Sequence record: NC_061440.1
Reading direction: 5' to 3' (one strand)
Length of the DNA stretch: 64,000 bases
This document shows, in pieces, positions 31,291 through 36,637 of the stretch. The position numbers were made by a program, and so were the translations under genes. How positions within the stretch are numbered: position 1 is the stretch's first letter; the number at the start of each line of letters is the position of its first letter. Below the pieces are notes generated by a model. The model was given only the letters and a program-made list of their open reading frames with translations, was not told where the DNA came from and did no database searches.

Positions 31291-32351
31291 ATAAGACCGT
31301 TGGCCTGATGATTGATGAAGACGTAATGAATTGGCTGGACATGCTGCTTGCTGGTGAACTAAGCAACGTCTTGGGTGCGTTGAACAATATCGTGTACGCT
31401 CGCCGTCAGGAACTGTCTGTCGAACGTCTGACCGAAGACGAAGACATTGGTGCTCTCTCCCACAAGGAGCTGGAGATCATTCTGCGTTACGCTGCGCCTA
31501 ACCATGAGTACGATACGTCGGTGCTGTCGAACGAACAACTGCTCCGCCTGGCGATGGACGCACAAGGGATCATCTCGTACACACTGCCGTGTCACTGTTC
31601 ACCTATCATGGTTAAACGTGCTTTCGCTAACGGCAACGTGTGCTCACTGCTTGGTGGTTTCTCTAATCGTGCTGATATTGTCATGGCTGTTCACCACTGG
31701 GAATGCGGTCTGTCTAACATCTCGCTCGATGGTGTAACTGGCAACGACGAACGCCCAGACGAACAGGGCATGTACCTGTGCTACGATGAGCACAAGCAAG
31801 TTCGATACGGTCGCCTGTTCAAGAACGCCAACGATGGATGGACATTCAGTGAGTATTATTCTGCTGGTGGATCTACTACGTGGCTTGAAGCGAGTCCAAA
31901 CAATGCGCTTGATGGCGACGACCTGCCAATCAGTCTGCTTTCTAACTGGGTATTCGTTGTTCCAGATCGTTCACCGTCTATCCTCAAACCTGCTGAGGGG
32001 TTCAAACGCCTGTCTGATACACAACGCATCTTCCTGTATCTGCGTAGCCTGAGTCCTCACGTTAAAGCTGAGATCGTCGCACACTTCGACGGCGTTCTGG
32101 ACAATCGATCATTCACCTCTGTCGATCAGATTGGTCGCCTGACCGAGAAAGACTGGCGCGATGCTGCAATTGCTATCGGTGAAGAAGAACGCGGCCAAGA
32201 AGGCGTTCACTACTGGGATGATCGTAGTGCGTGGGCTTGCTTCGTCGCTGTGCTTAATGCTCTGTGCTTCGACATGGACACACGCGACTTCCAACCGCAG
32301 TATGAATATCAGGCTAACGATGACACTATGGAAGAAGACAACAATGGCTAA
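31287..32351 (+). CDS. hypothetical protein (354 aa) with Rho-N-like segment
   Basis: GGAG RBS; IGALSHKELEIILR...LSNEQLLRLA. Confidence 0.75.
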   Translation: MNKTVGLMIDEDVMNWLDMLLAGELSNVLGALNNIVYARRQELSVERLTEDEDIGALSHKELEIILRYAAPNHEYDTSVLSNEQLLRLAMDAQGIISYTLPCHCSPIMVKRAFANGNVCSLLGGFSNRADIVMAVHHWECGLSNISLDGVTGNDERPDEQGMYLCYDEHKQVRYGRLFKNANDGWTFSEYYSAGGSTTWLEASPNNALDGDDLPISLLSNWVFVVPDRSPSILKPAEGFKRLSDTQRIFLYLRSLSPHVKAEIVAHFDGVLDNRSFTSVDQIGRLTEKDWRDAAIAIGEEERGQEGVHYWDDRSAWACFVAVLNALCFDMDTRDFQPQYEYQANDDTMEEDNNG

Positions 32352-32877
32352 ATCACTCGGCGTATACATGACTTACATTCTGCGACACAAGCCGCAGGAT
32401 ATCGGAATCGCAATGGACACCCAGGGTTGGGTGTCTGTTCTGGACTTCTTGCAGAAAGCGAAGTATGTGAAACAGGTCACTCTCGAAATGCTGATTGCCG
32501 AAGTTGAGGCGGACGAGAAAGGCCGTTTCGAGTTCAACTCTAACCGTTCCAAGATTCGTTGTGTGCAGGGACATTCGGTTGAGAACGTTATTCTGCATCT
32601 CGAACCGTTCACCGACCTTGCGCCTCTATATCACGGTACGGCTGATAAGAACGTGGCGTCAATCATGCACGAAGGTATCACGAAGCGGAAACGCAAACAC
32701 GTCCACATCAGCCGTGAGATCGAAACAGCCGAGAACGTTGGTCGTCGTCACGGTGCACCTGTTGTGTTTCAGATTGATACACAGGCAATGATCACTCACG
32801 GCTATAAGTTTTACCTCGCCGAGAATGGAGTCATCCTGACCGACCACGTACCGTCCAGATATATAAAGTTGGTGTGA
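32344..32877 (+). CDS. kptA: RNA 2'-phosphotransferase (KptA/Tpt1)
   Basis: YILRH, MDTQGWV, KGRFE, KIRCVQGHS, LYHGT, RKHVHIS, GRRHG, AENGVILT. Confidence 0.95.
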   Translation: MAKSLGVYMTYILRHKPQDIGIAMDTQGWVSVLDFLQKAKYVKQVTLEMLIAEVEADEKGRFEFNSNRSKIRCVQGHSVENVILHLEPFTDLAPLYHGTADKNVASIMHEGITKRKRKHVHISREIETAENVGRRHGAPVVFQIDTQAMITHGYKFYLAENGVILTDHVPSRYIKLV

Positions 32878-33280: not shown

Positions 33281-33298
33281 ACTAATTCGTGATACAAT
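33246..33298 (+). promoter_or_regulatory. conserved phage promoter, copy 4
   Basis: GCACAATTCTGG-ACGAAAT, 25 nt, TG-A-TACAAT. Confidence 0.65.
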
Positions 33299-33347
33299 AA
33301 AGACGAACGCTAGACAGTCGTTTAGCTACTTACATGAGGATATGTAT

Positions 33348-33677
33348 ATGAAAAAGTCAAAAGTTGAAGTTGTTGCGCCAACAATCGAAGGTCGCATTTT
33401 TACTCTGTACGGTGTTGGTCCTGTGCCTGACGAATCGACCACACCATTCGCAGGTCGTGATTCATTCTTACCTCTGCTTCATAAAGTTCAGGAGAGTTCT
33501 AAGCTGGAACGTATTCGTGGTTTATCCTGTTGTCCGTATTGCCGAGAAACGATGATGCTCGGTGAATACACCAAAGACAACTGGCTGTGGTCATATTCAT
33601 ACCAACATATGATCGAACACCACAACGTAACGCCGTCCGCAGAATTTATTGCATACGTCGAAGCCGCTTCCAAGTAA
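33348..33677 (+). CDS. small putative metal-binding protein
   Basis: RGLSCCPYC...W.W...HMIEHHNV.P..EF. Confidence 0.7.
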   Translation: MKKSKVEVVAPTIEGRIFTLYGVGPVPDESTTPFAGRDSFLPLLHKVQESSKLERIRGLSCCPYCRETMMLGEYTKDNWLWSYSYQHMIEHHNVTPSAEFIAYVEAASK

Positions 33678-33697
33678 CCTGAACTCCGCATGAGGAC

Positions 33698-35194
33698 ATG
33701 AATATGAAAAACATTAAACACACTTTCCGACTGACAGACCTTGTACGCATCTCCAAAACCCTGCTTCCTGGTCTGAATAAATCCACCGCAGGCCTTGAGG
33801 CGATTGTTGTTGGTCGCACCACAGGTCTTATGTACCAGTTACACATTAAAGGTCAAGGTGAAGTAGACAACTTTTATCCACAGGAAACATTGAGTCTGAT
33901 TAGCCACAACAACGGCGAACTGCTTGACCAGTGGGAAGCGGGTGACTATGGCCGTGACAAGAAAAAGAAACGCAAGATCCCAAAAGAACTGCGTAACTTC
34001 ACGGCAATCCTGCCTGTGACCTGCAATGCCGATTGTTCGTTCTGTCCTGAGAAAGAGATGGAGCAGAAAGCCAACCAGAAAGAGTGGCAAGATGGTTTGA
34101 TTGCCGAGATCAAACGCATGTACAAGAAAACGAAGTTCGACCACGTATCAATCAGCGGCGGCGAACCGACGTTGCGTACAAAGTTCCTGTTCGAAACGAT
34201 CGACCGTATTCAGAAAGAAACGCCGATCAAGAAAGTCGGTCTGACTTCTAACGGTCAGTTCCTTGAGAAACCAAACAGCACGTTCGACTTCTTAGACCGT
34301 AACACTGCGCCTGAGATGACCAGCAAGCTGTCGCATCTGAATATCAGTATGCACTCGTTCAACCGTGACCTTGCAAACAAGATCATGGGTGTGAACTACA
34401 AACAGACCCTGGAAGATTTAGTTCGCTTCCGCCGCCAGCTCGGCCGTGACGTTAGTTTCCACATTAACTTCGTGATCAATGACCAGACTGGTTCGATTAC
34501 GGAAGAGTTCAAACGCGCCGCTAACTTCATGCGAGCCAACCCGTTCATCGACGTTGTGTTCCGTGTTGACTACAACGATGTTGAACTGTCTAAGGCTCTG
34601 CGTGATTACGCTATGGAATATGAAGCGTATCTGACTAAGCTGCGTGATAATGCGAAGCGCCCTAAGAAGGGAATCATTCGTGAGCCGAAAGCACCGCATA
34701 TCGTTCAGAAGTTTGATCGCTTCTTCGGTGGCCAGAACCTTGAAGACGTTGAGAGCGCTTGGACTACAGGTTGCCCGTCATGCTTCACTCATGCGTCGAA
34801 CCCTGTCAATAACAGTCGTGCGTATTTGAAAGCGTCCTCGTATGAACCGAACGACGACGAAGAAGAATACACTGAGCTGGTGTACCACATGGACGGCGCT
34901 CTGTATTGGGATTGGACTCGCAATGACCCAGTAGCACTGCCGCGCTCAAAACGTTTCGACTTCGAAATGAAAGAAGAAGACTCTGTTACTGAGGGTCGCT
35001 GTTCATTCGGACCTGCTGCACCTCATCATTGTTCGTATGATTCAACTGGTACAACGGTCGCACCAAAAGCTGTGAAGAAACCTAAGAAGGTGGCACCTGC
35101 TAAGAAAGCGAAGAAAGTGGGTGGAAAAGTTTCGAGCGTTCCTGGTGCTGCACCTGGTGTTTGTGGCTACGGCAATAGTCGTTGTGGTTATTAA
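33698..35194 (+). CDS. radical SAM protein with SH3-like N-terminus and Cys-aromatic repeat tail
   Basis: CNADCSFC (CxxxCxxC), SISGGEPTL, LTSNG, LNISMHS. Confidence 0.9.
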   Translation: MNMKNIKHTFRLTDLVRISKTLLPGLNKSTAGLEAIVVGRTTGLMYQLHIKGQGEVDNFYPQETLSLISHNNGELLDQWEAGDYGRDKKKKRKIPKELRNFTAILPVTCNADCSFCPEKEMEQKANQKEWQDGLIAEIKRMYKKTKFDHVSISGGEPTLRTKFLFETIDRIQKETPIKKVGLTSNGQFLEKPNSTFDFLDRNTAPEMTSKLSHLNISMHSFNRDLANKIMGVNYKQTLEDLVRFRRQLGRDVSFHINFVINDQTGSITEEFKRAANFMRANPFIDVVFRVDYNDVELSKALRDYAMEYEAYLTKLRDNAKRPKKGIIREPKAPHIVQKFDRFFGGQNLEDVESAWTTGCPSCFTHASNPVNNSRAYLKASSYEPNDDEEEYTELVYHMDGALYWDWTRNDPVALPRSKRFDFEMKEEDSVTEGRCSFGPAAPHHCSYDSTGTTVAPKAVKKPKKVAPAKKAKKVGGKVSSVPGAAPGVCGYGNSRCGY

Positions 35195-35948: not shown

Positions 35949-36374
35949 ATGGCCAAGCATCATACCTTTCGTTTGAATGACCTGTGCGCTATTATGCCTA
36001 AGCGCGGTGTGCATGGTCCTCAGCAGGGTGAGCACGTTGTCATCGTTGGTCGCCATCCCGATCTGAATGAGTACACCATCTACTATAAAGATGGTCTGTA
36101 TGGTTGGTTCAAAGCCGAAGACCTTGCGCTCGTTAGACACGATGCCCACGAACAACTCGAATTGTGGGAAGACGCATACAATGAACGCTGTGCGCTCGAC
36201 CGTGAGCAGGATGATGAAGTCCAGATGCGTGAGCTTGACGCAATCGCTGCGAAGCTGGACTTGTCAGATGCAGGCAAATGTTGCGAGTGCGGAAAAGACC
36301 TCGATCCCGAAGACGGTGCAGATGATACGATGTGTCTGACCTGTCGCTGCGATGTAGATTTTGGAGATAGATAA
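35949..36374 (+). CDS. SH3-like domain + C-terminal zinc finger protein
   Basis: N-terminus paralogous to the radical SAM N-terminus; CCECG...MCLTC. Confidence 0.75.
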   Translation: MAKHHTFRLNDLCAIMPKRGVHGPQQGEHVVIVGRHPDLNEYTIYYKDGLYGWFKAEDLALVRHDAHEQLELWEDAYNERCALDREQDDEVQMRELDAIAAKLDLSDAGKCCECGKDLDPEDGADDTMCLTCRCDVDFGDR

Positions 36375-36637
36375 TGGCTGTAGGCTTTGTAAAAGATGAT
36401 GGCGTTAACGATACCATCGAAGCTAACCTGAACAACGAGATTGACCGCGCCCGTGCTGAACTGCTAGGCAAAGGCACCACGCACTGCATCAACCCTGAGT
36501 GTGGTGCAGAGATTCCACTGATGCGCCGTGTCGCTATGCCGAATGCTCGTTACTGTGTGGCCTGTCAATCAAGCCACGATGGTTCGGCTGTTAGCCACTA
36601 CAATCGTCGTGGCTCAAAAGATTCTCAATTGAGGTAG
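36374..36637 (+). CDS. ybiI: DksA/TraR C4 zinc-finger protein, YbiI-like
   Basis: C..x..CGAEIP..RR.AMP...C..CQ; ends YNRRGSKDSQLR as in enterobacterial YbiI (recalled). Confidence 0.9.
   Translation: MAVGFVKDDGVNDTIEANLNNEIDRARAELLGKGTTHCINPECGAEIPLMRRVAMPNARYCVACQSSHDGSAVSHYNRRGSKDSQLR

Follow-up and report, generated by a model that had tools for sequence, protein, structure and literature searches.

Plant BURP-domain peptide cyclases carry an enzyme and its own substrate peptide in one polypeptide. In the radical S-adenosylmethionine (SAM) enzyme MoaA, a basic C-terminal tail that is disordered in crystals enters the active site and sets off SAM cleavage, and the function of this tail can be supplied in trans by an 11-mer peptide (PMC12625886). 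In class I and some class II ribonucleotide reductases (RNRs), a disordered C-terminal Cys pair re-reduces the Cys pair of the active site (PMC9669993), and in the thioether-forming maturases PapB and Tte1186, the substrate Cys binds directly to the iron of the auxiliary cluster (PMC10177961). Here, we describe a radical SAM protein with a long Cys-tipped tail that is encoded in a 64,000-nucleotide stretch of sequence record NC_061440.1 (the window), part of the 265-kb genome of the Erwinia amylovora jumbo phage pEa_SNUABM_22 (Alexandravirus); window coordinates are the record coordinates minus 186000. The tail is functional, and the enzyme family that carries it is undescribed. Because both are conserved and their genes have been repeatedly fused or split, the enzyme, with its invariant CxxC motif, and a basic peptide, predicted to be flexible and ending in two or more Cys residues at its free C terminus, can be recognized as a single two-part unit.

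The open reading frame (ORF) at 33698..35194 (+) encodes a radical SAM protein of 498 residues that contains exactly nine cysteines. Cys 109, 113, and 116 constitute the radical SAM triad in the sequence CNADCSFC, and Cys 359 and 362 form a CPSC motif. In the tail, each of the four cysteines begins a unit in which the next residue is small and the one after it aromatic (C435-S-F, C445-S-Y, C489-G-Y, and C496-G-Y); the C-terminal unit makes up the final three residues of the protein, and a spacer rich in Lys, Ala, and Pro lies between the two pairs of units. All the letters and features listed in a first-pass annotation of this DNA, namely, the CNADCSFC core, the CPSC motif, and the four Cys-aromatic tail units, are present. 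The AlphaFold2 model of the protein, built on a 57-sequence family alignment, shows an N-terminal five-stranded beta domain with a helix (residues 15 to 80, of which 15 to 69 are the beta domain itself; predicted local distance difference test [pLDDT] scores above 90), a confidently predicted radical SAM core and C-terminal domain (residues 98 to 420; pLDDT above 90 in the core), and a disordered tail (residues 423 to 498; pLDDT 33 to 47). The first of these had been called SH3-like in that annotation; the modeled five-stranded fold is compatible with this description. The parts of the gene are as follows.

33704..35194 (+), radical SAM gene, 496 residues from the likely start; the ORF opens at 33698
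33719..33943 (+), optional N-terminal five-stranded beta domain, residues 8 to 82 (from the AlphaFold2 model; missing in many family members)
33944..33988 (+), basic Lys-rich connector, residues 83 to 97 (from the sequence; low pLDDT at residues 85 to 88)
33989..34597 (+), radical SAM core, residues 98 to 300 (from Pfam PF04055, invariant residues, and the fold)
34022-34045 (+), CX3CX2C motif, located within the radical SAM core along with an S-x-x-GGE motif
34598..34963 (+), C-terminal domain, residues 301 to 422 (from invariant residues and structural alignment with full-length MoaA)
34772-34783 (+), C359-P-S-C362 on a beta hairpin, invariant, in the C-terminal domain with E383-P384, E393, and D405-W406
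34964..35191 (+), disordered tail, residues 423 to 498 (from pLDDT, motif statistics, Cys-unit identity, and equivalents in the clade)
35000-35008 (CSF), 35030-35038 (CSY), 35162-35170 (CGY), and 35183-35191 (CGY, at the C terminus) (+), tail Cys units (from the sequence)

Of the sequenced phages, 47 from Erwinia, Dickeya, and Yersinia encode homologs of this protein, and its close relatives form 67 protein clusters in a large database, mostly on contigs longer than 200 kb. A Cys-rich Gly/Ser stretch terminates all 67 of them. These tails differ widely in length and cannot be aligned even where the cores are approximately 86% identical, so that what has been conserved is evidently a motif, not a sequence; a search of the PDB with the tail sequence alone gave no match. 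The last 40 residues of the 67 relatives contain 145 C-x-[FYW] units, compared to 16.3 ± 3.7 (maximum, 30) in 2,000 composition-preserving shuffles, an enrichment of approximately 35 standard deviations. The preferred unit is [S/R/G]-C-[G/S]-[Y/F], with Gly following the tail Cys in 96 of 210 cases. Spacing and position are also constrained: the last two cysteines are separated by 6 to 7 residues in 44 of the 67 relatives, and 40 of the proteins extend exactly two residues past the last Cys, whereas 18 have this Cys as their final residue (61 of 67 end no more than two residues beyond it). In four phages whose tails can be aligned, the Cys-unit segments are 97% and 94% identical and the spacers only 38 to 62%, with 92% identity in the catalytic core and 70% in the N-terminal domain. 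This difference between the Cys units and the spacers indicates that selection acts on the Cys units themselves.

An exhaustive profile search over 1.84 billion cluster representatives produced 2,219 hits at E values of ≤1e-3 and 332 hits at E values of ≤1e-10. Beyond the family proper, the scores fall to 90 to 150 bits, and most proteins still cover the whole profile. At least two cysteines in the last 30 residues, arranged as [G/S]-C-G ... [G/S]-C units, are found in 118 of the 138 further representatives, which, together with the 67 of 67 close relatives, bears out the tail as a conserved feature of the homologs. The aromatic residue is usually missing from these units. Because most of the distant tails have the [G/S]-C-G...C form without it, C-x-[F/Y] is a local flavor of a general Cys-Gly tail. 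The Cys-aromatic motif on which the first-pass annotation was based is thus far beyond chance in the close relatives, but its aromatic part is limited to the Erwinia/Dickeya/Yersinia subfamily, and cross-linking of Cys to aromatic residues is therefore not the logic of the family as a whole.

The following counts refer to the 135 further representatives that were aligned to the profile. The median tail runs for 60 residues past the core; two cysteines are the commonest number (58 of 135), and there are up to eight. The last two cysteines are 4 to 8 residues apart, and 64 proteins end at the last Cys, 29 have one further residue, and 13 have two, a total of 106 of 121. In the enzyme, the radical SAM triad is retained in 133 representatives and C359 and C362 each in 134; G154 and E156 of the GGE motif are invariant, and G155 is present in 130. 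N215-x-S-x-H219, E383-P384, E393, and D405-W406 are conserved across the set, whereas H365 and H397 are not, and only two conserved cysteines are found downstream of the radical SAM core. The tail motif persists down to approximately 25% core identity. Across the clade, there are 2 to 10 Cys units per tail, and some tails are tandem repeats. In the metagenomic member P0088, the last 30 residues form a perfect tandem repeat of a 9-residue unit with C-G-G; judging by this repeat, tail units can expand by amplification.

Wherever their genomic context is readable, these genes are surrounded by phage sequence: the contigs carry T4-type markers, genes for head-tail joining and for tails, and series of small ORFs. 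Among sequenced phages, the best matches of the distant members are the Erwinia, Dickeya, and Yersinia jumbo phages; for the member P0126, a related-locus search found no relative in IMG/VR. More than 100 related enzyme groups, mostly from uncultured phages, have either the same kind of tail or a mini-gene next door.

The strongest support for a functional tie between tail and enzyme comes from relatives in which the tail is encoded by an adjacent gene. Eleven clade representatives stop 8 to 18 residues past the core and have no Cys tail. In four independent cases of this kind (loci L021, L022/L023, L027/L028, and L031), a small ORF of 65 to 82 residues is found on the same strand within two genes downstream of the enzyme. 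The encoded peptides are basic, and all their cysteines are in the last 10 to 22 residues, in the tail motif. Every peptide ORF starts with an ATG of its own and is equipped with a GGAG-type site. In three of the four cases, this ORF either overlaps the enzyme gene or is separated from it by no more than 3 nucleotides; in the remaining case, it overlaps a small ORF that lies in between. On these contigs, each of the three stop codons is normally used to end long ORFs, and two of the enzyme-peptide pairs recur in independent assemblies with 100% and 99.7% identity. Given these start signals, the ordinary use of stop codons, and the recurrence of two pairs, assembly artifacts and stop-codon recoding were rejected as explanations of the split forms. 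As a control, 1,372 six-frame ORFs from 279 kb of phage loci were screened with a strict tail rule, which selected nothing but the radical SAM genes, their split peptides, and two antisense ORFs that are unrelated to them. The tail-less members do not form one lineage, and the nearest relatives of each of them carry tails. From this scattered distribution, it follows that fusion or fission of enzyme and tail has occurred repeatedly and that the peptide must be able to function in cis as well as in trans. The fused state is dominant, and the tight translational coupling of the split genes suggests a 1:1 subunit rather than a substrate made in excess. The view that the tail serves the enzyme, either as a fused substrate or by supplying additional metal or active-site ligands, is thus strongly supported.

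The assignment to the radical SAM superfamily is based on the C109-x3-C113-x2-C116 motif, the conserved SAM-binding motif G154-G155-E156, the partial TIM-barrel fold, and the match to Pfam Radical_SAM (PF04055), which covers residues 107 to 264 with 54.2 bits against a cutoff of 29.5. The Pfam scan of the window protein returned Radical_SAM and Fer4_12 only, and the precomputed Pfam assignments of all the relatives are likewise confined to PF04055 and PF13353. The top Foldseek matches are all radical SAM enzymes, with MoaA in first place for both models over nearly the whole chain (E values of 7e-9 and 2e-11; TM scores of 0.56 to 0.59), followed by viperin, SuiB, BlsE, DesII, anSME, and SkfB. 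When the profile was compared with the PDB, viperin (the best match, with an E value of 1e-8), YydG, and MoaA were nearest (E values of 1e-8 to 5e-6). The best NCBIfam matches, HxsC, MoaA, and prokaryotic viperin, all reach a fifth to a quarter of the respective cutoffs. HxsC (TIGR03977) has the best E value (6.5e-16) and a score of 58.1 against 267.9; the MoaA models score 47.9 against 284 (TIGR02666), 56.5 against 325 (TIGR02668), and 57.7 against 231 (NF001199); the viperin models score 48.7 against 180 (NF038283) and 25.6 against 450 (TIGR04278); and NrdG2 (31.2 against 131), NrdG (24 against 126), PFLA (30.5 against 232), and QueE (20.8 against 260) also fall short. With all these scores below the curated cutoffs, membership in the viperin, MoaA, QueE, NrdG, and HxsC families was rejected, and the enzyme falls outside QueE, NrdG, and the other curated families, as the inference of the first-pass annotation required; the viperin-like nucleotide chemistry that this annotation also brought up is conceivable but finds no support in the membership scores. 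The resemblance to viperin and its prokaryotic counterpart pVip consists of the best sequence-profile match in the PDB, a similar core fold, and a match of the PADLOC pVip models to residues 106 to 262 (E value of 2e-11), that is, to the core only: approximately 160 to 200 core residues align, and viperins lack the CxxC domain and the Cys tail. Overall, the enzyme can be placed in the MoaA/viperin/twitch neighborhood of the radical SAM superfamily and, judging by its scores, in no described family. The ortholog in Erwinia phage Y3 (Y3_274; L009:3007-4350) is annotated in GenBank as GTP 3',8-cyclase MoaA, a label that is unsupported since its family scores are 48 to 58 bits against cutoffs of 231 to 325.

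Several more specific assignments of the conserved cysteines were also considered. A C2H2 zinc site made of C359, C362, H365, and H397 was rejected since both His residues are unconserved in the wider clade. The tail was likewise rejected as a glycyl-radical site: Gly follows the Cys in only 96 of 210 cases, the activase models score far below their cutoffs, and there is no glycyl-radical-enzyme fold. As the core keeps only C359 and C362 besides the triad and neither of the two His residues is conserved, any second metal site would need further ligands.

The explanation that we tentatively favor, with a confidence that stops slightly short of even, is that the tail is a tethered active-site arm, comparable to the MoaA tail and the dithiol tail of RNR, and that it acts in concert with the invariant CxxC. 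The extreme C terminus of this long, flexible, basic arm would swing into the active site, as the MoaA tail does, and the terminal Cys pair would cooperate there with the CxxC, either by filling the open ligand positions of an auxiliary Fe-S site or, alternatively, as a dithiol or hydrogen donor needed to finish each turnover, as in RNR. The substrate is probably nucleotide-like. The strict C-terminal position of the cysteines fits recognition of a free C terminus. MoaA, the best whole-chain structural match, shares with the phage enzyme a radical SAM core followed by a C-terminal domain that, in MoaA, carries the Cys ligands of a second cluster, and it has a flexible basic tail that ends in small residues and works in trans as a peptide (PMC12625886). 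The two also differ in several respects. The three-Cys motif for the auxiliary [4Fe-4S] cluster of MoaA is absent from the phage protein, where C359 and C362 are the only conserved cysteines of the C-terminal domain and there is no third conserved core Cys. The tails of the clade span 30 to 200 residues, compared to 11 in MoaA, and have Cys units at their ends (C-G-Y here, mostly Cys or C-G elsewhere) in place of the MoaA Gly-Gly; finally, the phage gene stands alone, with no molybdenum-cofactor genes around it. The likeness to RNR, likewise a radical enzyme, lies in a disordered tail with a Cys pair near the C terminus and in a further, conserved Cys pair in the catalytic core (PMC9669993); it is a functional analogy, not homology: the fold and the radical source are unrelated, the Cys spacing in the clade is 4 to 8, the number of pairs varies, and the spacer is long and basic. 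In the phage clade, RNR-type thiol-disulfide exchange between tail and core, with re-reduction by thioredoxin or glutaredoxin, would be hypothetical.

A number of observations weigh against an active-site arm. The spacers, at 30 to 200 residues, far exceed the 11-residue tail of MoaA, and the presence of 2 to 10 Cys units, along with tails made of tandem repeats, would be unexpected for a fixed set of ligands. AlphaFold docks no tail confidently: the pLDDT of the tail is 33 to 47 here and 52 to 62 in the short-linker member P0073. The auxiliary cluster and its CxxC site are putative, as is the equivalence of the latter to the MoaA cluster site. For three other tail-less members, all on short contigs, no partner peptide was found. 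Finally, the split forms, in which a small peptide gene adjoins that of the radical SAM enzyme, have the classic layout of a precursor and its maturase.

This layout leads to the second explanation, a fused system resembling those that make ribosomally synthesized and posttranslationally modified peptides (RiPPs), in which the tail would be the enzyme's own peptide substrate. We consider this the main rival, plausible but less probable than the arm. It overlaps with the arm explanation in that the tail cysteines would approach a metal site at the CxxC in both. In a conceivable but uncertain mechanism, a tail Cys would bind the open iron of an auxiliary cluster at the CxxC and the 5'-deoxyadenosyl radical would abstract a hydrogen from a neighboring residue; the outcome, which is equally speculative, could be a Cys-derived cross-link or another modification that yields a modified peptide or a protein-derived cofactor, in some phages from two genes. 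The four independent split arrangements resemble pairs of precursor and maturase, and the adjacent small Cys peptide gene is a trait shared with CteB, PapB, Tte1186, SkfB, and SuiB: a dedicated small peptide accompanies the enzyme, fused here and encoded separately in four relatives. Other features consistent with this explanation are the repeated fusion and fission of enzyme and tail, the variable number of repeats and hypervariable sequence around a fixed motif (as in multicore RiPP precursors), the location of the motif at the extreme C terminus, the presence of SuiB, SkfB, CteB, and anSME among the (moderate) structural neighbors, and the binding of the substrate Cys to auxiliary-cluster iron in PapB and Tte1186 (PMC10177961).

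Most peptide-modifying radical SAM enzymes contain SPASM and RRE domains. In the phage protein, Pfam detected no SPASM domain at an E value of ≤0.1, and neither Pfam nor NCBIfam reported a peptide-recognition (RRE) domain; a mycofactocin- or PQQ-type maturase is not supported for the same reasons. Unlike in the thioether maturases, no SPASM/twitch set of cysteines was detected in the clade, the peptide is usually fused to the enzyme, and the context is that of a lytic phage, with no tailoring, protease, or export genes; neither protease nor exporter genes were found near clade members in the loci examined. The nearest relatives of the enzyme act on nucleotides. Fusion would restrict each enzyme molecule to a single tail, and the tight coupling of the downstream split genes suggests 1:1 stoichiometry. 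The aromatic residue is absent from most of the clade, and in many tails the conserved part is limited to two cysteines among Gly and Ser, with no obvious acceptor. The BURP-domain cyclases do provide a precedent for an enzyme fused to its own substrate peptide, but they are eukaryotic copper enzymes with an unrelated fold, and their core peptides are internal repeats rather than C-terminal ones. The failure of family scans to detect SPASM and RRE domains and the lack of nearby protease and exporter genes would favor the arm over the substrate. The fused precursor proposed in the first-pass annotation thus stays plausible without being the best-supported explanation, given the undetected SPASM domain, the unreported RRE domain, and the precedent of MoaA, in which the tail is a catalytic arm.

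Still less probable, in our view, is a noncatalytic tail, which would be either a basic nucleic-acid-binding or localization arm with a metal- or disulfide-forming Cys tip or an Fe-S or zinc capture site for cluster acquisition in the host. The spacers and split peptides are indeed strongly basic (10 to 24 Lys and Arg against 8 to 11 Asp and Glu), the number of cysteines varies as it does in metal-binding peptides, and RNA-repair-type genes are often found nearby (Tpt1/KptA here; Thg1, CCA-adding enzyme, PTH2, and phosphatases elsewhere). However, under the strict rule applied to the 279 kb of phage loci, the tail accompanies only this radical SAM clade, and its link to the invariant core CxxC and its strict C-terminal placement point to the active site. 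As for a functionless low-complexity read-through with motifs arising by chance, the region is of low complexity and predicted to be disordered, but this origin is effectively refuted by the ~35-standard-deviation enrichment, the 94 to 97% conservation of the Cys units, the persistence of the motif at ~25% core identity, and the retention of the tail as a separate gene.

In literature searches, we found no description of this radical SAM clade or of its tail, in agreement with the earlier suggestion of an undescribed system. Published genome papers list the gene only as "radical SAM superfamily protein," and the GenBank labels of clade members are "hypothetical protein," "radical SAM superfamily protein," or, wrongly, "GTP 3',8-cyclase." As delineated by the profile search, the clade is large and uncharacterized, comprising hundreds of sequence clusters, and phage-borne in every context examined. 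The repeated fusion and fission of an enzyme and a Cys-tipped basic peptide mark an undescribed two-part machine, which would be new for radical SAM enzymology whether the tail is an arm or a substrate. If it is an arm, a protein-borne dithiol or ligand arm serves a radical SAM active site, extending the principle of the MoaA tail. Should the less likely alternative hold, namely, that these are self-contained single-gene peptide-modification systems, widespread in phages, that modify their own tail or the product of a mini-gene, they would represent the first fused class of radical SAM precursor-maturase and a large phage-borne RiPP-like family whose product is used during infection. The natural fused, split, and tail-less variants allow these forms to be compared without engineering. 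The clade also flags a widespread accessory function of large phages, with the gene often found among RNA-repair-type genes: L022 includes Thg1 and two phosphatases, and L018 includes a CCA-adding enzyme, PTH2, and a Macro domain. Such neighbors may hint at an RNA-related role or simply reflect the clustering of accessory genes in large phages.

The region upstream of the radical SAM gene contains the following elements.

33290..33298 (+), promoter-like extended -10 element TGATACAAT (from a consensus scan)
33309..33326 (+), leader with the small inverted repeat GCTAGAC...GTTTAGC (nearly invariant in 9 phages)
33332..33350 (+), translation-initiation module ACATGAGGAnATGnATATG, copy 1, before the small ORF (from a pattern count)
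33348..33677 (+), accessory 109-residue Cys/His protein (CCPYC...HMIEHH), not an obligate partner
33688..33706 (+), translation-initiation module ACATGAGGAnATGnATATG, copy 2, before the radical SAM gene (from a pattern count)

The segment with the extended -10 element and the hairpin leader (33290-33339, plus strand) is conserved across Alexandravirus, Sasquatchvirus Y3, and Dickeya phage AD1, and TGnTAnAAT is kept in 9 related phages, whichever gene comes next, the small ORF or the radical SAM gene. Elsewhere in the window, the pattern formed by the -10 element and its flank is not significantly repeated (5 matches, compared to 3 expected). The small Cys/His ORF is present in SNUABM_22, 16, 3, and 1 and absent from Alexandra, SNUABM_2, 35, and 40, Y3, and AD1, where the promoter and leader adjoin the radical SAM gene. 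The 19-nucleotide ribosome-binding and start module occurs in 2 copies in the 64-kb window, compared to 0.03 expected. Its duplication fits an insertion of the small ORF between the leader and the radical SAM gene, or the loss of this ORF, and the pattern of presence and absence in syntenic phages looks like the result of recombination between the two copies. Because the Cys/His protein is missing from most relatives with the same promoter and leader and is flanked by the duplicated module, it was rejected as an obligate partner of the enzyme and regarded as an accessory insertion; it had no match in the family scans. The context described in the first-pass annotation is thus partly confirmed: in this phage, a conserved promoter-like element, of putative early type, and a small Cys/His ORF precede the radical SAM gene, but most relatives lack the ORF. 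Within this phage group, the radical SAM gene is an accessory gene too: AD1 and Y3 carry it, and the related Dickeya phage JA11 does not (PMC6143709).

Both ORFs begin with paired in-frame ATG codons 6 nucleotides apart (33698/33704 in the radical SAM ORF and 33342/33348 in the small one), and in both, the second ATG has the better GAGG spacing and is the one used by GenBank. For the radical SAM gene, the second ATG, at 33704, is the likely start, giving 496 residues: a GAGG at 33692-33695 precedes it by 8 nucleotides, it is the GenBank start, and the homologs start at the equivalent Met.

The N-terminal beta domain of the radical SAM protein has a paralog in the first 75 residues of a 141-residue protein encoded at 35949-36374 (+) (33% identity; E value of 1e-8). 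This paralogy indicates that the domain is a mobile module, found in at least two proteins of pEa_SNUABM_22; a protein of Klebsiella phage Miami also matches it by fold. The 141-residue protein terminates in a Cys-rich acidic stretch. No tRNA genes or Rfam matches were found in the 64-kb window. Upstream of the promoter-like element, an ORF at 32344-32877 (+), labeled as a hypothetical protein in GenBank, encodes a Tpt1/KptA-family RNA 2'-phosphotransferase (Pfam E value of 3e-43). On the other side, a gene at 36374-36637 (+) encodes a DksA/TraR-type C4 zinc-finger protein (Pfam E value of 9e-12; PHROG 54), and in all related phages examined, such a DksA/TraR-type gene follows the radical SAM gene at a distance of a few genes.

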